A stretch of 64,000 bases of DNA from Glycera tridactyla (lineage: Eukaryota): contig OZ286472.1 in assembly GCA_965644265.1 (NCBI GenBank), forward strand, positions 39,556,001-39,620,000. The letters are read 5' to 3'. The position numbers and the translations under genes are program-made. Below are positions 1,491 through 18,937 of the stretch, one piece after another. The stretch's first letter is position 1; every line of letters begins with the position of its first letter. The notes beneath the pieces are model-generated. The model was not told where the DNA came from. It was given only the letters and a program-made list of their open reading frames with translations, and searched no databases.

Positions 1491-2974
1491 CTTACCACAT
1501 ATACAGTAGCTTCATACCATCTTACACAGCTCTATGTCGCCTTTTTCTTCAGCTGTATTTTGGGCAGGTGAATGGGGATTTTCACCTGCCCTTCACAGCA
1601 TTCATACCTGCTCTCCTGCATATAATTGTAGACTGAATAACAATCATGCACCAGCACATTGGGAAGGCAGACTGACAAAATTACCTGCTCTAACAGATAG
1701 TGTCGGAATCATCCCTTGTCTCAGAATCGATTAAATGGTCAGCATTTTAAATCAATTAATTCGATCAAATAAGTTTCGCTTGGATGATACCATGCTGATA
1801 TGAAATTCATGGACACTCTGAAAGAGAGTTCATGATCAATGGAAAGTCTGGTTAAGTCAATAGCTGCAGCAGTAGGAGTGGCAGAAACAGGACTAGAAAC
1901 ACCGATTAGGAAACACCTGCACTTGTCTGATGACATCAACAGCACTGCTACCCACCCAACCACCACCCTGACCATCCACCGATTATTACCACCATCCACC
2001 AATACCCATACCACGCCACCACCACTATACCCAAGGAGAAGGCACAAGCTCAGCTGTTAGAAGTTACAAAATGAGAATGAAAGATAGACAAATAAATCTT
2101 GAAGAAAGATGTCCTGGACTTGATTATTCTAGGAAGAATACATTTAATGATCCCCTAGATCCAGGGACTTTCTGTATTTTCCTATAGGCTAACTCCTAAT
2201 GGTAACTTACATACTCTTCTCCTACCAATTTGACATTCATTGCATAACAATCACTATTATCCATGTCTTGAGGACCACATCTTCTTAGATTGTGGTTCAT
2301 CAGATCAGTGAATCTTGGTGAAATGGTGTTAAATTACTTCATTATTCCTTCCATGAAACTTCGACCAAGTTTAGATCAATGATAAGTGTCAAGCATCAAA
2401 ATCAGGAAAGTTGGTGTGCAGACTTAGCAGCTGTCTGATAGTGAAGAGATCTCCATCCACAGGCTGAGACCTCCAAAATGACTGTCCGTTCTTACCACAA
2501 TACGCTATGAGTCATCTAATAGCACTCTGGCACAAGACCATGCAAATTTCTCACCTGAAACAGAGAAAGATGCATCACATGATACAGATGAAAATATTGA
2601 ATTACACTAAGTCATCCAATCCAGTGCATGTCAACTGGGATATCAAATGCTGGCCATGTGTATGCACATGGAAGAACTATGCTATCCATTGTACTGGCAG
2701 AGGTGCTTCTTTCCTTCAGCATTCTCAGTTTGATATGACTTAAGGCGGTTGGATGGACATTGAAACCTAACAAACAAATCCATAGTCTAAAACATATTAT
2801 CACATGGATATGTCATTTTCAGTGAAGTAACAGGTGTTGAGTAATGCGTATGTTACTTAACAGTTGGCTGGGGAACTTCTTTTTCTGGCACTGCCTTCTT
2901 GTGATTTTGACAGGCATTTTTTTTCTCAACAATTGCTCACTTAAATGTGTTTACTCGCAATAAAGACACGGAAA

Positions 2975-3148
2975 ATGCCTTTTTTTCGCTCTTTTGGGAT
3001 ATTTCGTGGCCAGGTACAGGTAAGTACATGTGCACTGGTCCCCTGTCACTGGCCATCCAGAAAGTAACATTGCAGATGAACTTGACGACCATGAACGAAG
3101 TTTTTCGCATAAATCTCAGCCCTTCGTTCATGCGACTCTTCTCTCTAG
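2975..3148 (+). CDS. Possible first two coding exons (2975-3019, 3076-3148) of the Crypton gene
   Basis: ATG at 2975; GTAAGT donors at 3020 and 3149; TTGCAG acceptor at 3075. Phases 0 then 1 join in frame to the 4109 exon (MPFFRSFGIFRGQVQ|MNLTTMNEVFRINLSPSFMRLFSL). No recognisable protein motif. Confidence 0.3.
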
Positions 3149-3236
3149 GTAAGTGTCATGCTATCGCATGAAAGATCATTTTGAAGTGTTTTATGACTTT
3201 TTCGCTATCATTCTTTGTGAATGAATGCCAATGATA

Positions 3237-3715
3237 GCGTGCGCTCACGCATTCGTTCTTTTAGCCTGCCGCTGTCAATTAGACATAAAGTCTAGCCTGG
3301 ACTATAAGTAGTCCCCGGCCCGCGCTCTTTGCGAAGCCTCCCGAGTGCCGGAATTGCATGTTTAGCCAACGTATCCTTCTATATAGAAGCAAATAGACGG
3401 AAATAAAATCAATTTGGCGATTTACAACTGCTATTTGATGATTTGACGTGTGTACATGCATGCGCTCACGCGTCCGGCAGTGTCAGGAGTGTGCGCTCAC
3501 GTGTTTGGTCACCCTAGACATGGAATAGTCCCCGGTTCCCGGTGCCTGCAAAGCCAAACTGACGCATTATTTGCATGTTTAAGCAGAGTACCTTCGCATA
3601 TAGAAGCAAATAGACGGAAATAAATCGCAATAGACCTTTTAGTAGTGTTTTGGGAAGAATCCATGCGTTCTGCATTTGCGCGCGTGTGCTCGCGCGTCCG
3701 CCGGTGCCTGTCAAA
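3237..3715 (+). repeat. Diverged ~230-250-bp direct dimer
   Basis: GTGCGCTCACG...TAGTCCCCGG...TTGCATGTTTA...TATAGAAGCAAATAGACGGAAATAAA occurs twice (about 3240-3410 and 3490-3625). Confidence 0.75.
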
Positions 3716-3720
3716 TCCAA

Positions 3721-3929
3721 GTGTGTATGTGTGTGTGTGTGTGTGTGGGGGGGGGGGGGGAGAGTTTTCTTCTCTCTCTCTCTCTGCTTGTCTCTCTGCC
3801 TGTCTATCTCTCTCTCTGCCTGTCTATCTCTCTCTGACTGTCTATCTCTCTCTTTGTCTCTCTCTCTCCTCTCTCTGTCTCTCTCTCTCTCCTCTCTCTG
3901 TCTCTCTTTCCTCTCTCTGTCTCTCTCTG
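3721..3929. repeat. Compound microsatellite (GT)n - G run - (CT/CTGT)n
   Basis: Seen directly; it explains the spurious low-complexity ORFs at 3514-4013. Confidence 0.95.
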
Positions 3930-4108
3930 CCATTTTACTTGAAATATCAGGTGTTGAGTTATGCGTGCATTACTTCACAGATAAGTGAGAACAAATATGT
4001 GAAGATATGGTAGCCAGGAGGTAATTTTGGTAGCCACTGGCTTAATATTGGTAGCAATTGGCTAAAAAAAGAAACACTGAACTGAATCATGTATCCCTTC
4101 TTTTGCAG

Positions 4109-4201
4109 ATGATGATCTGGATGAATTTGATGGCGTTCTCGATGCATTAATAGAAGATGATGAGGCAAGAGAAAAAAACAGCAGCCTGCCTAAAGAGAAC
4201 G
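4109..4201 (+). CDS. Phase-1/phase-1 coding exon upstream of the Crypton ORF (acidic, DDDLDEFDGVLDALIEDDEAREKNSSLPKEN)
   Basis: Acceptor CCCTTCTTTTGCAG|, donor |GTAAGC at 4202, open frame, phase compatible with the next exon. Confidence 0.6.
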
Positions 4202-4477
4202 GTAAGCATGAATTGGATGGTTAAGCCTAAAAGAAATGGCCATGAAGGAAAATCACAATACCAAACAATGTATCATTCTGTAGAGAGACTAAATGCCCGT
4301 TAAGTAATAGCGCAATACTCAACACATGATATTTCACTGAAAATGACACATCAATGTGATAAACCACATCCTGGCAAGCTGTGAAGTATTACACGCAATA
4401 CTCAACACCTGACCAATTCACCTGAAAATTCTTCATAAATGCGAAACAAAGCCTGAAAAAATGCTTTCTTTTCACAG

Positions 4478-4594
4478 GTGGTGCACCAGTGACGAAAAAA
4501 CCCAGGTTACAACCAGAAATGCGACCAAATACATCAGCAGCATCAAATCCACCTGGCCAGCCTACAGAAACTGTTGACGTACAAGAAGCGATCG
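4478..4594 (+). CDS. Phase-1/phase-1 coding exon (GAPVTKKPRLQPEMRPNTSAASNPPGQPTETVDVQEAI), KKPR NLS-like
   Basis: Acceptor CTTTCTTTTCACAG|, donor |GTGAGC at 4595; splices in frame to TTCTTTTCTTTCCAG|4889. Confidence 0.62.
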
Positions 4595-5291
4595 GTGAGC
4601 ATTTCACTGAAAATGGCACATCCATGTGATAATAGCTAACTGTTAAGTAACACAGGCATTACTCCGGATACTTAAATGAAAATTGTCGTAACTGAAAAGA
4701 AGAATTGGATGCAGGCTCATACTCATTTTCTTCTTGTTATCCTTCTTGAGGTCAAATCTTGTTGGAAAGTGGACATCCTCAGCTGTGAAGTATCACACGC
4801 ATTACTCAACACCTGGAACTTCATTGAAAATAACACGAAATGCGCATGCCTATAGCAATGACTTAAAAAATTATTCTTTTCTTTCCAGTGGGTGATCCGG
4901 ACATACAGACACCCAGAAATCTACCACAGACATGCTCAGAGGCCCCATCGGAATTGAATCTAGATGACCTCCGTACAGAGACCACTGGACACATTCGAAG
5001 AGCGCTCAGCGCCAGCACGAGGCGCAGAATTGATGCCAGCGTGGAAAAATTCCAGCATTTCGTCGCACAAAGAGGGGATAAGAGGCCCCTACAGGACATC
5101 CCAATTGAGATGTTGGATCACCTCCTTGGCCTCTTTCTGATTGACCTGAGGAAGGTGGAAAATGATGAGTACAAACCAGCATCCATAAGATCGTACAGAA
5201 GCTGCATAAGGAAATATCTTGCGGAAACAATCCCGAACGTGGATGCAGAGAAGGACTTGAGCAATGCAGAGAAATGCCAGTACGCTAAATT

Positions 5292-5569
5292 CAGGGATGT
5301 GATTGGTTCACAACCAAAAACACTGAAAACCTGACCGGGAGCACTTCTACCAAGATTTTGTTGGTCAACAAATCCAAGCAACTAGTGACTGAAGGCTAAT
5401 AGAACTTCATACAAACATTGTGCTCCATCTCCACTAATAATGGTCCGATTTTCATGATCTAAAAACCAAAATAATCAGCAAAGATCGCCCTTTGTTGCCA
5501 TGGGTATGTCTTGCTGATTCTCAGCAAAAACACGGAAATCCGCGGATCCGCGGAAGAATCACACCCCTG
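5292..5569. mobile_element. 278-bp TIR MITE with CAGGG ends and 6-bp TSD (hAT-like), inserted in the Crypton ORF
   Basis: CAGGGATGTGATT...AATCACACCCCTG (12/13 inverted match); TAAATT at 5286-5291 and 5570-5575. Excision restores the frame: EKCQYAK-LKELKSKGKGN. Confidence 0.9.
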
Positions 5570-5913
5570 TAAATTGAAAGAACTTAAGTCAAAGGGTAAA
5601 GGCAACATACCCAATAAAGCGCAAGAGCTCAGCCCAGAAAACGAAGAGCAACTGTGGGATTCAGGGGCATTGGGGGACGGATCCGCAGAGGTCCTGGTGA
5701 ATACCATCTGGTACTTAACGACAAAACTTATGGAATTCAGGGGCCAGCATGAAAGTAGACAGTTATGTATACAAGATTTGACACTGATTGATGGTGATGT
5801 GCAGGGGGGAAGTTCCATGAGAGACTCACTAAAACCAGAAATGGCAACACCAACATGCCCAGGGAGTTTGCCCCCAAAATGTTTGAAAATGTTGAGAACC
5901 CAGCACGATGCCC

Positions 5914-6519
5914 AAGTTGCCGGCCGGTGTGACAACTAGAATGCTAGACTGCGTGTCAAACGCATGGCTTCCTCAAATTCACACGTCACCTTTACCAGTG
6001 AAAATACCATAGAAATATCGAACTCACAGTGAAAACGATAACACGATTAAATCCGCGGATATCCATTTGTATATAATCCATGTATAAATCCTGAGAATCC
6101 ATTGAATATTCGCCAGAAACCGTGCAGATGTCAAGAGAGCAGCTTCATCTCTGTGCGCCGCCATCTTGGATCTAACCTCCTTGTTGGCTTTCGTTTGCCG
6201 GGAAATTCCTACATCTGTGGTTCTCAGTCACATGACCTAAACGTTCTATCTTAAGAACGTATACATGGGGGAAGCCCTGGCTCTCCTCTTCACAATTGTG
6301 TTTCGTTTATATCAATACTCATAGTGAAAGCCCTCCAAATAAATTCTGAAGTATGTCAACTCATTTTTTCGCGATATTTTGGGCTAGAGGCGTAAATTGG
6401 CGTCCCATGCGCACGTTGACAGGCGTAAATCGGCGTCCTATGCACCAGGAGACTATGCATAAATCGGCGTCCCATGCGTACGCGGGGTAGGCGTAAATTG
6501 GCGCGTATGCAGTAAAGGG
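5914..6519 (+). mobile_element. One-ended piggyBac-like non-autonomous fragment in the Crypton ORF
   Basis: Ends TATGCAGTAAAGGG|TTAA (6520-6523), with four subterminal GGCGTAAATYGGCG(TCCYATGC)-type repeats (two imperfect). Internal sequence matches 48190-48560 in reverse complement and 23620-24020. The Crypton frame reads RCP before and VKLYILHRP after. Confidence 0.8.
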
Positions 6520-7622
6520 TTAAATTGTATATATTGCATCGGCCAGCTGACTGTAAGACAGAGGCATTTTTTCTTGGAGTGAACAGTAATGTGAAAGCGA
6601 AACGCTGGTACTTGGATAGTCCCATGGGTGAGAATAGAATAGGACACATGATGGGGCGGATATCAAAAATTGGTAAATTGACAGGGAGGTTCACAAACCA
6701 CAGTGTACGTCGCACAATGTGCACACAATTGTTCCGGGAAGGATATTCCCCCATTCTTATAGCCCAACTTTCTGGGAATAAGAATGTTAGCAGTTTGGCT
6801 AGATATACTACTGCATCAAAAAATCAACAGCTCCAAATGTGTCGGTCCCTCCAAAGTCCGAAATCCAACACAACGATTATGCCGAATACATGGAATGCAC
6901 CCCAAATTGCAGAGACTGATGAAACCCCAAACAAACAGATGACGGTATGCAACGCAACTACCTCAAACCAGCTGGTCCCACCATCACAGGTGAACAAGAT
7001 GATTGCGGTCTCAACACAAGAGGTCCGCGGCATGTTCGCTGGCGCAGTGTTCAATGGTCCAGTAAATATCAACTTTGCATCAGCATCATGAATGACACAT
7101 CTGAAATTAACACTCATGCGTACTCCTGAATGTATCCGCTCACTTCTGTATGATGTTTTAGCAGGTTTCACGTCCATTTCTTGTGAATAAAGCCATGTTT
7201 GTTCCAGCGTACTTCCATGTGTTGTCATTGCGTGTCAACTAGGCATCTAACTAGCTCTAGACTGGACTACTTCACCAGGTCAAAACTGGGCAGATCACTG
7301 CACAACGTGGTGCTTTGCCCGAGAATATAGTTCTGACTTTTGCGCTTCGAATACTACGATTTCTCATTTCTGCCGAAAGTTCCACCATCAACAAAACCTC
7401 GTTGAATTCTATTTTAGTTTCAATGGCATCGCTTTCTAGTCTCTTTCACCTCTGAAAACTTGATTCCAAGGTCAGTGGCAGCTCCGACTTTCGGCGGCTC
7501 ACTGGGACCAGGCAACTTGTATCACTACGCTTTGTTTTCGTTCGTTGCTCGGCAGTAATTTTCAATTCTTCTGGTCTCAAATCCTCCCCAAACACATTTC
7601 ATCATCAAATCCATGTGATAAA

Positions 7623-7765
7623 AGCAAGATGAAATGGCCGTTAAGTAATGACACATTACCAAAGGAGGTGCGAAGTTGCCGAATGTCACTCGGCCGAGTG
7701 ACATTTGGCAAACTTCGCACCTCGTTTGGTAATGCGTTATTACTTAACGGCCATTTCGTCTTGCT
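7623..7765. repeat. 143-bp near-perfect palindrome with no loop
   Basis: Arms AGCAAGATGAAATGGCCGTTAAGTAAT...GTCACTCGG|CCGAGTGAC...ATTACTTAACGGCCATTTCGTCTTGCT. Confidence 0.92.
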
Positions 7766-7838
7766 ATATTAAGTCAGAACAAACTTCAAAAGACTTGTCT
7801 GTAGGTTATTCCATTCTCAACGCATCAGCATCACACAG

Positions 7839-9265: not shown

Positions 9266-10365
9266 CAGTCAAACCTCCCTCTAATGACCACCCTCAGTCG
9301 CACGTCAGAGTGGTCATTATTGGGAGGTGGTCGCTATAGAGAAGTTCTGATGAAAAATACGTTGGTGGCGGCCATTACTGTAAACATCACAAAGAACCAA
9401 GATACCTGGATGTATGAACGAAACTCGCAATTTTTTCAACATAAAGACGATTTTAGAGGTTTTAGAAGGTTATCTTTCGATCTGTCAAGAGGATTTGAAG
9501 AGATATGAAGAACTTTCATTTGAAATTAAGAATAGTAACGATTTGAGAGCAGCGAGCAAGTGAGCTGATCTGAGCACAAATCCCGGGCTCGATACAGACG
9601 ATTGGCGCAGACGAATGTGAGCAGATAGCAGTGTGGCTGAGCTCATTTCACAGTCTCAGGTACGGACAATCCAGGCCGGCCACTGGGCGGTCGTTAGAGG
9701 GGGTTGGCGGCCAGATATGAGCAGATTTCACGGTGTTGACTTTGGCCGTGCGGTCGCTGGAGGAGGGAGACCGGCCGCTGCTAGCTGCTTGGCTGAGCTC
9801 ATTTCACAGTCTCAGGTATGGACAATCCCGGCCGGCTACATGGTTTGGCTGGGCGGTCGCTGGAGGAGGGAGACCGGCCACTGCTTGTTTGTTGACGGGG
9901 AAAGTGAGTTCATCTGAGCGGCGAGCAAGCGGAATCTGAGCAGATTTCACGGTGTCAAGTTTGGTCAGAAGGTCGGTGGAGGAGGGAGACCGGCCGCTGC
10001 TTGTTTGTTGACGGGGAAAGTGAGTTCAACTGAGCAGCGAGCAAGCGGAATCTGAGCAGATTTCACGGTGTCAAGTTTGGTCGGAAGGTCGCTGGAGGAG
10101 AGAGACCGGCCGCTGCTTGTTTGTTGACGGGGGAAGTGAGTTCATCTAAGGGGCGAGCAAGCGGAATCTGAGCAGATTTCACGGTCGTGAGTACGGCCGG
10201 CCAACCGTGAGTGTTCGTCATCGGGAGGTCCGTGAACCAAACATGGCGGTCGCTGGCTGGAGGTTGGAGGTGGTCGCTATATGGAAGACAATTACAGTGA
10301 AAATACGTCGGTCGCAGTCAAAGGTGGTCGTTATAAGGAGGTGGTTGTTATAGGAGGTTTGACTG
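9266..10365. mobile_element. Longer (1100-bp) copy of the 295-952 pogo-like MITE, with an internal tandem expansion
   Basis: TA|CAGTCAAACCTCC...GGAGGTTTGACTG|TA; both ends align to 295-952; about four 103-116-bp internal units. Confidence 0.92.
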
Positions 10366-16476: not shown

Positions 16477-18087
16477 AAACTAGAGAGGTGTCCATAGGAC
16501 ACAGATGCCTCTGCTGAGACCCTGACCTATGAGTGAGCGACACAATCTAAACACATAACATGTCTTCTTCATATGATGATCATGTGTACCTATTTATTTG
16601 AAAATCCTATCATGGAAGAATAAGTTATGGGCCAGACAAAAATTGACAAATCAGAGGTCACCATTTGGTAGGAACTCAATGAAATGTGGCAGATTGTGCA
16701 CGCAAAATATCATCCTCATATGATGCACCTATTTATTTGAAAATTCAATCATGGATGGCAAGGTTATGGGCCGGACACAAATCAACCAATCAGAGGCCAC
16801 CATTTGGTGGGAACTCACAGTTTTTGCTCATGACACATTGTCTTCATATGGTGATCATGTGTATCAAGTTGTATGAAAATCCAGTCACGGATGGCAAAGT
16901 TATGGACTGGACACAAATTGACTGATCAGAGGCCACCATTTGGCGGGAAATCACTCAAGCATGACGATTCTTGCTCATGACACATTGCCCCTATATGATG
17001 ATCATGTGTACCAAGTTTTATGGAAATCCAGTCACGGATGGCAAAGTTATGGGCCGGACACAAATTGATCAATCAGAGGCCACCATTTGGTGAGAAATCA
17101 CTCAAGCATGACGGTTCTTGCTCATGACACATTGCCCTCATATGATGATCATGTGTACCAAGTTTTATGAAAATCCAGTCATGGATGACAAAGTTATGGG
17201 CCGGACACAAATTGACCAATCAGCAGTGACCATTTCGCGGGTAATCACTCAAGCATGACAGTTCCTAATCATGACACATCGCCCTCATTTGATGATCATG
17301 TGTACCAAGTTCTATGGAAATCCAGTCATGGATGGCAAAGTTATGGGCCGGACACGAATTGACCAATCAGAGGCCACCATTTGGCGGGAAATCATTCAAG
17401 CGTGACGGTTTTTGCTCATGACACATTGCCTGTATATGATGATCATGTGTACCAAGTTTTATCATCAGATAGCGCCTGTAGCGTGTATGTAATCGTCGTC
17501 CACCTTGTATGTACATAGGAATCATATAACCTCGGAGATTATACTCCTCGTGGTATAACCATTCCCTGGTCGTGTGACGCTTGTATGCCATCGCTGATTG
17601 GCCATAGTACAATCGCTGTCAAAGGTCAGCTATTGTCAACTCGCAGCGTCGCGGGTTTGATTTGTATAGCGTCACGGCATACATTAGGAAAGATGCCAAG
17701 AGAAAAATCGCTGAAATTCAACAACCGCTGGTCGGATTTTCACAAACTAAACACCAAATTGTAGGTAATACATTCTTCTATCCATTTTTTGGATGATAAA
17801 TACAGAATACCCCTCGTGCCGTGGACGAGAAAGCGTTACGTGACTCGCATCCTGCCCCGGGAAGGCACTTGTGGCCTGCGGTCACTCGTGCCTTCCCGGG
17901 ACACGCTGCTTGTCACGTAACTCCTTCCCGGCCATGGCACTCGGGGTATTCTATATAATTATGAAAATCCATTCATGGATGGCAAAGTTATGGGCCGGAC
18001 ACGGACCGGACACATACACACACACACACACACACGGACAGGGTAAACACTATATGCCTTCGCCATGATACGGCGGAGGCATAAAAA
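16477..18087 (+). mobile_element. Helentron-associated (HINE/CvA-like) element with 147-bp core array
   Basis: 5' AAACTAGAG.. and subterminal ATGCCTCTGC (16505); about 6 core units (ATGATG anchors at 16995, 17142); (CA)n; 3' hairpin TATGCCTTCGCC-ATGATAC-GGCGGAGGCATA followed by an A run. Confidence 0.78.
17463..17958. mobile_element. TIR-less 496-bp insertion with TTAT duplication and terminal 147-bp palindrome (Crypton-like non-autonomous candidate)
   Basis: TTAT at 17459-17462 and 17959-17962; empty site CCAAGTTTTATGAAAATCC in a neighbouring unit (about 17159); palindrome at 17805-17951. Confidence 0.7.
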
Positions 18088-18937
18088 GCTACTGCTGAGC
18101 CCTGCATGATCATGGATTTCAGCAGACAACTGAGCAGTACGTATCGCTGGATATCAACAAATAATTTTGCCAACTGATGTGTCTTTCACAGCTTCCTTCT
18201 TTGGGATTTCCTGAACAACGTCTATTTCCTTGCCATTGTCTTAGTGTCAAAATGTAACCTGTCACATGACCTGTCACATGACACTGCACTCAGCCAACAG
18301 GTGGCATCCTGATGGTCATGTGACCATCGTCAGTTGACATACACATGTCCATTTCAACCATATTCAGGTTCGCTGTCAACCTTTGAAGTGCACCTAGCTA
18401 CTGAGGTACTTTGTGAACTCCCCGACTCTTGGTGAAACACTTGGATGGTGTGACCAGCGGAGATCGGCCAGATCAGACAGTCATAATGTCCCTAGAGAGA
18501 GCTAAATCATCACACTACACCACTAGATTTGACAATAAACCAACGGCTGAATGGGGAAGTTGTTATTCTTCATCCTTATTTCTGACCAGTGTAATACCTG
18601 CATACGCTTTCAATAAAGGAAAAGACCAACAGGATGTGGCCAAGAATCGAGAACAGTTGTATCGTTGCTGCACTGACTTCCTGAATGTTGTGGCAATAGT
18701 GCTTAAAACAGTGATACAATATTTTGATGCTCTATAGTAATTCATCAAAATCAGAGGACAAACCCCCCACGGCGAAATTCATGGATGTAATGATATATGA
18801 GAAGATGTAGTATTCTAGCATGAAAAAAACAGCATAAACCCACAAAAATACCCAGATTTCAGCAACTTATATATTTATATATTTTGTGTGGGGCAATATG
18901 TTGATTACTACACATCATTGGTATCAGATCAGATGGA

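Follow-up and report, generated by a model that had tools for sequence, protein, structure and literature searches.

Non-autonomous Cryptons have been known since 2011, when CryptonA-1N1_OL and CryptonA-1N2_OL of medaka and CryptonI-1N1_RPro of Rhodnius were reported among the animal families (Kojima and Jurka, 2011; PMC3212892). The 50 animal Crypton copies compared in that study have no terminal repeats of any kind, and a palindrome is not mentioned. Fungal and oomycete Cryptons, in the Goodwin 2003 model as summarised in PMC3212892 and PMC13465315, have terminal direct repeats of 4-6 bp, and the Crypton model treats such flanking short repeats as microhomology with the target and not as a duplication (PMC13465315; PMC3212892). 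Here, we analyse a 64-kb stretch of the Glycera tridactyla genome (G000:C34:39556001-39620000; the window), in which a 500-bp element at positions 17459..17958 of the forward strand interrupts a tandem array. We infer from its sequence that the element is probably a non-autonomous, gene-less transposon of Crypton type that would be moved in trans by a Crypton tyrosine recombinase.

The 500-bp family resembles the medaka and Rhodnius families in that gene-less copies far outnumber recombinase-bearing ones, in that the extreme ends do not form a pair of terminal inverted repeats (TIRs) and in that nothing is duplicated on insertion (PMC3212892). Unlike them, it has a pair of inverted 12-nt sequences, one terminal and one subterminal, as well as an imperfect palindrome of 157 bp and a target defined as D-T-M-Y. 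A further difference is that the described families share 98%-identical ends with an autonomous partner, whereas the 500-bp family is tied to recombinase-bearing elements by architecture and about six terminal letters. With the fungal and oomycete Cryptons, as far as the summarised model describes them, the family shares a short element-end sequence that matches the target, read there as microhomology in site-specific recombination of a circle; the match is, however, loose in the 500-bp family (3-4 of 4 bases in 20/32 copies) and one-sided. What is new is not the existence of gene-less Cryptons but a high-copy gene-less family with a base-exact insertion rule derived from empty sites, with counted junctions and with a strand bias of the word CTCG that is shared across families. 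A palindrome or hairpin in Cryptons is mentioned neither in PMC3212892 nor in the 2026 paper on the fungal DUF3504-encoding CryptonA elements named Glomhopper (PMC13465315), and further full-text searching, with a coverage that excluded Repbase reports, gave nothing on Crypton ends.

Inserted unit, target site and family

The element lies in an array of 147-bp units (16741..18003, forward strand; Tandem Repeats Finder period 147/294, supported by alignment). Four uninterrupted sister units read ..AAGTTTTATGAAAAT.. / ..GTACCAAGTTTTATGAAAATCC.., each with a single TTAT. In the fifth unit the sequence breaks off after ..AAGTTTTAT and continues at TTATGAAAATCC; with the insertion, the site has the letters ..AAGTT-TTAT-CATCAGAT...TCTATATAA-TTAT-GAAAAT. 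The array alignment agrees with a preliminary description of the window, made from its letters alone, in which an insertion was placed in one tandem unit with the empty site readable in the sister units. The same description gave the insertion as 496 bp and took TTAT for a 4-bp duplication, or terminal direct repeat; neither of these two points is borne out by the genomic copies.

The search for copies of the family covered the whole genome of 2.04 Gb in 207 contigs. With the 496-bp sequence as the query, 3,303 first-look candidate places were obtained, 40 of which were scored. Most of the scored copies match from position 1 or 16 to position 496 with 84-93% identity; those that start at 16 form a subfamily with a different stretch directly after the first 12 nt. 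The ends and targets were then tabulated for 32 copies, selected because they match the window copy best. The four bases to the left of CATCC are T in 32, T in 31 (C once), A in 32 and T in 32 copies, that is TTAT in 31/32 and TCAT in 1/32, and no base is significantly preferred at the position before them (A 15, C 4, G 6 and T 7; n = 32; p = 0.15). To the right of TCTATATAA, the four bases occur as 17 different tetramers, with TTAT in 6/32 only. Since the left TTAT is nearly perfect and the right tetramer is loose, there is no true duplication: equal decay of two originally identical copies cannot produce such an asymmetry. The right-hand bases are nevertheless biased towards the sequence of the element end. 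Positions +1 to +4 (n = 32) are T in 20 copies, T in 29, A in 22 or C in 8, and T in 17 or C in 13, which corresponds to D-T-M-Y, and at least three of the four positions match TTAT in 20/32 targets against 2.4 expected. A preference for TTAT-like targets, one of the checks proposed in the preliminary description, is thus present family-wide.

The empty-site comparison puts the duplication to a direct test. The left flank without TTAT was joined to the right flank and the joined sequence was sought elsewhere in the sequences retrieved. Five independent paralogous empty sites match the joined flanks gap-free and with no duplication. The first is the window copy against the sister units of its own array; the second is the copy at locus L007 against L014 (76/76 positions aligned, 93% identical); the third is the copy at L018 against a 116-bp repeat at window positions 9971-10026 and also against L018 itself; the fourth is the copy at L027 against L053; and the fifth is the copy at L015 against L015 itself. 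Because these sites are gap-free, the element comprises 17459-17958, a length of 500 bp that also agrees with a sharp drop in conservation at both edges; TTAT is its own first four bases and nothing has been duplicated. The TTAT at 17959..17962, single in each sister unit, is host DNA of the 147-bp unit, and the window copy happened to land in front of this perfect look-alike target. The rule that emerges is insertion of the whole element, without target duplication, directly 5' of four bases that resemble those with which the element begins.

The same data bear on two other readings. The TTAT to the left of CATCC in 31/32 copies, the subterminal hairpin and the lack of a duplication would also follow if a single-strand element like those of the IS200/IS605 group entered on the 3' side of a fixed host TTAT, in the way that IS608 uses TTAC. 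Such an element requires TTAT on the left of the empty site, however, and three of the five sites read aaacc|atata, ggctg|gtctc and aacaa|gaacc, without it. The 17 variants of the four bases after TCTATATAA mark these bases as host DNA and not as a fixed right end. Insertion after a host TTAT is contradicted by the empty sites, and we regard this reading as very improbable. Still less is to be said for a retroposon (a short interspersed nuclear element) or another RNA-mediated repeat, to which we give hardly any credence. The high copy number and short length of the family are what such a repeat would show, but no tRNA was found in the 500-bp element, no Rfam family matches it at E <0.6, and a poly-A or simple-repeat tail and a duplication are lacking at a 3' end that consists of a 157-bp hairpin; the empty sites and the end statistics contradict this reading as well.

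A MAFFT consensus of 31 copies is 490 bp in length (TTATCATCCGAT...GGGGCATTCTATATAA), and the copies are 85-95% identical to it. Identity reaches 98.7-99.6% in five pairs of copies from different loci, with at least 99.2% in four of the pairs, from which it follows that several sublineages were active recently. The ends are constant among the genomic copies, as the preliminary description had proposed to check, and neither the variable ends nor the true terminal TIRs or poly-A tail that it named as grounds for abandoning its reading were seen in the copies examined. No open reading frame (ORF) of more than 59 amino acids lies wholly inside the 500-bp element. The five empty sites without target-site duplication, the microhomology between the D-T-M-Y target and the TTAT of the element, and extreme ends that share only TTAT/ATAA and thus form no TIR pair are all features by which Cryptons are recognised.

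Copies of the family also occur joined to each other. When two mismatches at most are allowed, the genome has the head-to-tail junction GCATTCTATATAA-TTATCATCCGAT 28 times; the reversed pattern, used as a control, gives 0. From a few thousand copies and tens of millions of TTAT sites we estimate that less than one such junction would be expected by chance. The two joined copies at L003 are only 87% alike and belong to different subfamilies, which indicates separate insertions, one beside the other. New copies are often inserted precisely at a resident 5' end, and head-to-tail pairs result.

At L027:1357-1502 and L053:105-211, one family copy has inserted into a different element that also ends in a palindrome, 5 nt within that palindrome (AACAA|GAACC). 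This host palindrome contains CGAG 2-4 times and CTCG 0 times and therefore lies in reverse orientation.

Arms, dyad site and palindrome

The element has the structure TTATCATCCGAT...ATCGGATGATAA-(157-bp imperfect palindrome)-AA. The 5' arm (17459..17470, forward strand) reads TTATCATCAGAT in the window and TTATCATCCGAT in the consensus, where it is 98.9% conserved over the 31 copies. Its inverted copy is subterminal: TTTGGATGATAA at 17788..17799 (forward strand), ATCGGATGATAA in the consensus, directly precedes the palindrome, and consensus positions 320-331 are the exact reverse complement of positions 1-12. The statement in the preliminary description that the element is TIR-less, with ends that are not inverted, therefore stands for the extreme ends but overlooks the recurrence of the 5'-terminal 12 nt in inverted form at 17788-17799.

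The palindrome occupies 17800..17956 (forward strand), with arms at 17800-17876 and 17880-17956, and could form a hairpin or a cruciform. Its arms are 79% complementary, the predicted DNA fold has an energy of -53.6 kcal/mol (z = -9.3) and 0/200 shuffled sequences fold as well. The fold test thus supports the terminal palindrome recognised earlier and extends it from 147 bp (17805-17951) to 157 bp. In the consensus, 64/78 positions are paired, and three points of the stem are TC-opposite-TC (or TT-opposite-TC) double mismatches that lie within CTCG or CTTG words. The element closes with the 2-nt tail AA (17957..17958, forward strand), conserved at 100%; the four bases beyond it vary and belong to the target.

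An internal dyad at 17537..17560 (forward strand), GATTATAC-TCCTCGTG-GTATAACC, is a candidate recombinase-binding site. The inverted halves with an 8-bp spacer that had been noted at 17540-17557 are part of this larger structure, which is a perfect 8-8-8 dyad in the 31-copy consensus. The spacer has the same CTCG word as the palindrome arms, and a repeat listing finds ATAC-YCCTCGTG in both the site and the left arm of the palindrome, in line with the earlier remark that the left arm repeats the spacer core. The symmetry and the shared word are the support for this putative site, and a crossover placed there may be entertained as a conjecture.

The perfect 12-bp inverted repeat that bounds the first 331 bp of the 490-bp consensus invites a composite reading, in which a 342-bp miniature inverted-repeat transposable element (MITE) with 12-bp TIRs (TTATCATCCGAT...ATCGGATGATAA) was moved by a DDE transposase and stands beside a separate palindromic module. 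All five empty sites show, on the contrary, the whole 500-bp unit inserted at once without duplication, conservation is unbroken up to TCTATATAA in about 30 copies, and two recombinase-bearing Crypton families of unrelated sequence, C1 and C2 (see below), have the same two-part layout. The composite origin is contradicted by these data, and we consider it very improbable. The 500-bp element as a whole was also rejected as a MITE of a DDE transposon, with neither TIRs at both extreme ends nor a duplication of fixed length.

In the 5' third of the element, a CCAAT-box-like word (ATTGGCC) is present at window positions 17594-17608, and a relative of the family at L061:6594-6640 has CCAATCAG twice. 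These words are on the bottom strand and face outward through the 5' end.

Recombinase-bearing Cryptons with a comparable layout

The window itself contains a recombinase-bearing Crypton, family C1, at 2797..7768 (forward strand), the ends of which were set by own-genome searches and by 11 short derivatives. Its exons match Phage_integrase (2.4e-8) and DUF3504 (3.9e-9). Its 5' end is TTATCACATGGAT after a variable base, the inverted copy ATCCATGTGATAA lies at 7609-7621, a 143-bp palindrome follows at 7623-7765 and the tail is ATA; the 3' end GCTATA is reached at 7768, beyond which the right flanks vary, with T at +2 in 9/12. The short derivatives are 539-1476 bp in length (n = 11). Ten of the 11 have the 5' end TTATCACATGGAT, or one base off, with a variable base before it, and one copy is degraded there; in all of them an inverted copy precedes a palindrome of 143-151 bp and the 3' end is GCTATA.

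The layout of C1 corresponds closely to that of the 500-bp family. Both have a 5' TTATCA..GAT, an inverted copy of it before the palindrome, similar last letters (CTATA), a short tail after the palindrome (AA, 2 nt, in the 500-bp family and ATA, 3 nt, in C1), T at target position +2, head-to-tail junction forms and no duplication. The remaining sequence is unrelated. The internal site is of the AAGTAAC type in C1 and GGTTATAC-N8-GTATAACC in the 500-bp family, and C1 is without the paired CACYYGTG octamers that the 500-bp family has at the apex of the palindrome.

The design extends beyond the window. A Pfam DUF3504 scan of the genome gave at least 990 candidates, many with open frames of 450-650 amino acids. 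A palindrome of at least 100 bp lies within 1.5 kb in 23/30 DUF3504 loci, compared with two such palindromes in the whole 64-kb window, both of Crypton type, and it is downstream of the gene wherever the orientation is readable. Locus L063 holds a complete 2.64-kb Crypton (C2 type) with a single 540-aa ORF, the 5' end TTATTATATGACAT, an inverted copy before a 116-bp palindrome and the tail AT. Like the 500-bp family, C1 and C2 both begin with TTAT, finish in a tail of 2-3 nt and show no duplication.

The palindromes of these families have little sequence in common, but they are imperfect in the same way. In element orientation, the ratio of CTCG to CGAG is 5:0 in the 500-bp family, 5:1 in C1, 7:1 in C2 and 7:1 in a fourth family (L063 8692-8849), or 24:3 when pooled over the four families (binomial p = 5e-5). 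As a perfect palindrome would hold a word and its reverse complement equally often, the excess of CTCG marks one strand. In addition, two direct CACYYGTG octamers flank the apex at positions 67/84 in the 500-bp family and at positions 68/81 in the recombinase-linked C2. The imperfection of the palindrome is thus conserved across families that are otherwise unalignable, and we take it as the strongest specific tie between the gene-less and the recombinase-bearing families. The preliminary description had proposed a second family mobilised by a tyrosine recombinase, with the same design as the larger element of the window. The anatomy common to C1 and the 500-bp family (the TTATCA start, the inverted copy, the 143-157-bp palindrome and the T-rich target) upholds the second half of that proposal; for the first half, mobilisation by a tyrosine recombinase is probable, and no recombinase-bearing partner with the same ends was found at the loci searched.

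In the search for this partner, the consensus and five individual copies served as BLAST queries; the sequences searched were 30 DUF3504 loci (±1.5 kb) and four 10-kb stretches around two of them. The search gave only weak similarity in the palindrome (67-73%; L035/L063 and L057/L061). The match at L061 was rejected as a partner: it belongs to a separate short relative that lies, in reverse orientation, upstream of a recombinase gene, and the homology of the gene's own family begins 47 bp further along.

Several points weigh against movement by a Crypton recombinase. No recombinase-bearing element with the ends TTATCATCCGAT / ATCGGATGATAA, the autonomous form that the preliminary description had proposed to look for, is present among the 30 loci and the four 10-kb stretches, and the link to a recombinase therefore consists of shared architecture and about six terminal letters, not of shared terminal sequence. 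The design is also not universal, as the L057-type recombinase family lacks the 5' arm expected from its 3' arm. Conservation of the 8-8-8 site (92%) shows no excess over the element background (about 91%) and is uninformative on function. We infer, and do not observe, the circle, the position of the strand cut and the action of the recombinase. Finally, the layout of the 500-bp element, with a terminal arm, a subterminal arm, a 3' hairpin and no duplication, is formally that of the published Helitron2.

This last point has to be weighed in its own right. In Helitron2, the 5' arm lies 0-2 bp from the end, the 3' arm is directly upstream of the 3' hairpin, the element starts with a 5' T and no duplication is made (Bao and Jurka, 2013; PMC3627910). 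The 500-bp family shares with Helitron2/Helentron elements these asymmetric TIRs, the 3' arm just upstream of the 3' hairpin, the 5' T and the lack of a duplication. It could accordingly be read as a non-autonomous element of this type, rolling-circle copied by an HUH Rep/helicase, with the arms and the 3' hairpin marking the start and stop of strand displacement. Head-to-tail arrays occur in the family, and Helentron-type repeats are present in the genome, where they form the host array itself if the label given to it in the preliminary description is followed. The differences are nevertheless considerable. The 500-bp family has no 5'-terminal hairpin (z = -0.53 for the window copy and -0.24 for the consensus), its 3' hairpin is 157 bp rather than a few tens and, because of this length, its 3' arm ends about 160 bp (159) from the 3' end and not the 20-30 of Helitron2. 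The Helitron2 rule of insertion between T and T, or after a run of T, does not hold: the five empty sites have the junction dinucleotides T|T, C|A, G|G, A|G and T|T, three of the five thus departing from T|T, and the base preceding the element varies over the 32 copies as given above. The tandem pair at L003 joins two subfamilies and is not a rolling-circle multimer, and the hairpin at the end of the host array has a 12-bp stem, unlike the 157-bp palindrome. The same design with a CTCG-biased palindrome is found on elements of 2.6-5 kb whose sole gene is a tyrosine recombinase. A Helitron2 identity is therefore unlikely in our judgement, although it is the alternative that we take most seriously, and a Crypton-type element remains the preferred explanation of the 500-bp family.

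Some further observations concern these loci. The host array ends, at window positions 18004-18090, in a CA microsatellite and the 12-bp-stem hairpin (18053-18064 / 18072-18083); this hairpin, so unlike the 157-bp palindrome, fits the earlier Helentron-associated label of the array. At its 5' terminus, the C2-type Crypton has a hairpin, TTATTATATGACAT-GCTTCGC-ATGTCATATAATAA (L063:8290-8325, minus strand), which is Helitron2-like and which the 500-bp family is without. At L061:6794-9345 (G000:C34:18011793-18014344), a Crypton with a 539-aa frame has a C2-type 3' arm and palindrome and no matching 5' arm; its family homology begins at about 6794 within AATGCTAAATTGAC, with the short relative of the 500-bp family located 47 bp upstream in reverse orientation. 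The 3' arm, palindrome, tail and 5' arm are contiguous in recombinase-linked families at L047:154-332, L042:429-609 and L036:473-607, and these junction forms are either head-to-tail pairs or integrated circle junctions. Four DUF3504 matches with 484-aa frames, spaced at about 2.43 kb on one strand at G000:C18:102204976-102212736, form a head-to-tail array of whole Cryptons.

A different element that starts with the same 12 nt (TTATCATCCGATATAGAG...) lies immediately behind the 3' tail of a C2-type Crypton at L056:316-412 (minus strand; G000:C32:55068814-55068910). About 95 nt into the element, its sequence is broken by an unrelated repeat of high copy number (L056:1-316, minus strand; 3,770 candidate places, 88-95% identity), the inverted arms of which measure about 90 bp and are separated by a few hundred bp. 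The first 93 nt of the element have at least 1,126 candidate places, and the 40 scored matches are 99-100% identical (38/39 at 100%), a near-total identity that points to a very young family. None of these 40 matches is near any of the 150 recombinase matches listed. By its sequence, the L056 element would be an abundant relative of the 500-bp family or, possibly, the 5' end of a partner.

A possible route of mobilisation and its implications

When the ends of the element are joined in silico, the palindrome is bordered by the two arms and grows to about 180 bp, with a 2-nt bulge exactly at the junction; the joined form folds at -81 kcal/mol, compared with -70.5 without the 5' arm. We propose that the element would leave as a circle, or be copied into one, so that its tail ...TATATAA is joined to TTATCATCC. 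In the joined form the 12-nt arms would flank the palindrome and the break point would lie at the 2-nt bulge that separates the long stem from the outer stem of 12 bp. Binding of the recombinase may take place at the palindrome arms and at the internal 8-8-8 site, both of which carry ATAC-YCCTCGTG, and strands would be exchanged at the break point with a target able to pair with TTAT through its first 2-4 bases. Such a route accords with the Crypton model of flanking repeats as microhomology (PMC3212892; PMC13465315). The exchange would be one-sided, with a fixed cut on one strand that is completed by replication or repair.

The one-sidedness is suggested by the junctions. The left junction always carries the TTAT of the element and the right junction always the bases of the target, and hence the exchange does not look like a symmetric two-strand exchange of overlaps. 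If we reason from lambda-type recombination, a symmetric exchange over a mismatched overlap should put the element version at the left junction in one half of the lineages and at the right junction in the other half. All 32/32 copies have it at the left, which a single fixed cut followed by replication or repair fits better. The 28 genomic head-to-tail junctions are integrated tandems and not circles.

The attC sites of integrons and the dif-like hairpin of CTX phage are imperfect palindromes in which conserved mismatches mark the strand; tyrosine recombinases act on these folded single strands, replication finishes the reaction and the resulting junctions are asymmetric. These are bacterial systems with hairpins of 60-150 nt, and for the 500-bp family the likeness is one of analogy only. 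The one-sided junctions and the strand-marked hairpin leave room for a folded-strand mechanism, and we put forward, as a tentative possibility that we hold to be clearly less probable than its alternatives taken together, that Cryptons of this design and the 500-bp family may recombine via folded DNA (a hairpin or cruciform): the mismatched palindrome of about 150 bp would mark one strand, the cut would fall at the foot of the hairpin beside the 12-nt arms, and a single-strand exchange with a TTAT-like target would be finished by replication. If this were true, folded-DNA recombination would be a eukaryotic counterpart of integron attC recombination or CTX-phage integration, and the ends of these elements would be convergent on the Helitron2 layout.

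For annotation, the family is a warning that asymmetric inverted repeats and a 3' hairpin do not automatically mean a Helitron. Cryptons are, to our knowledge, the least understood class of eukaryotic DNA transposons, and we know of no transposition assay for them. Those of animals have been reported as having no recognisable terminal signals (PMC3212892). The 500-bp family offers a short, abundant and recently active substrate with exact ends, and as candidate cis signals it supplies the pair of 12-nt arms, the palindrome with its marked strand and the 8-8-8 site. By its insertion rule, the element enters 5' of D-T-M-Y without duplication and prefers the 5' ends of resident copies, and together these features make the mechanism directly testable.

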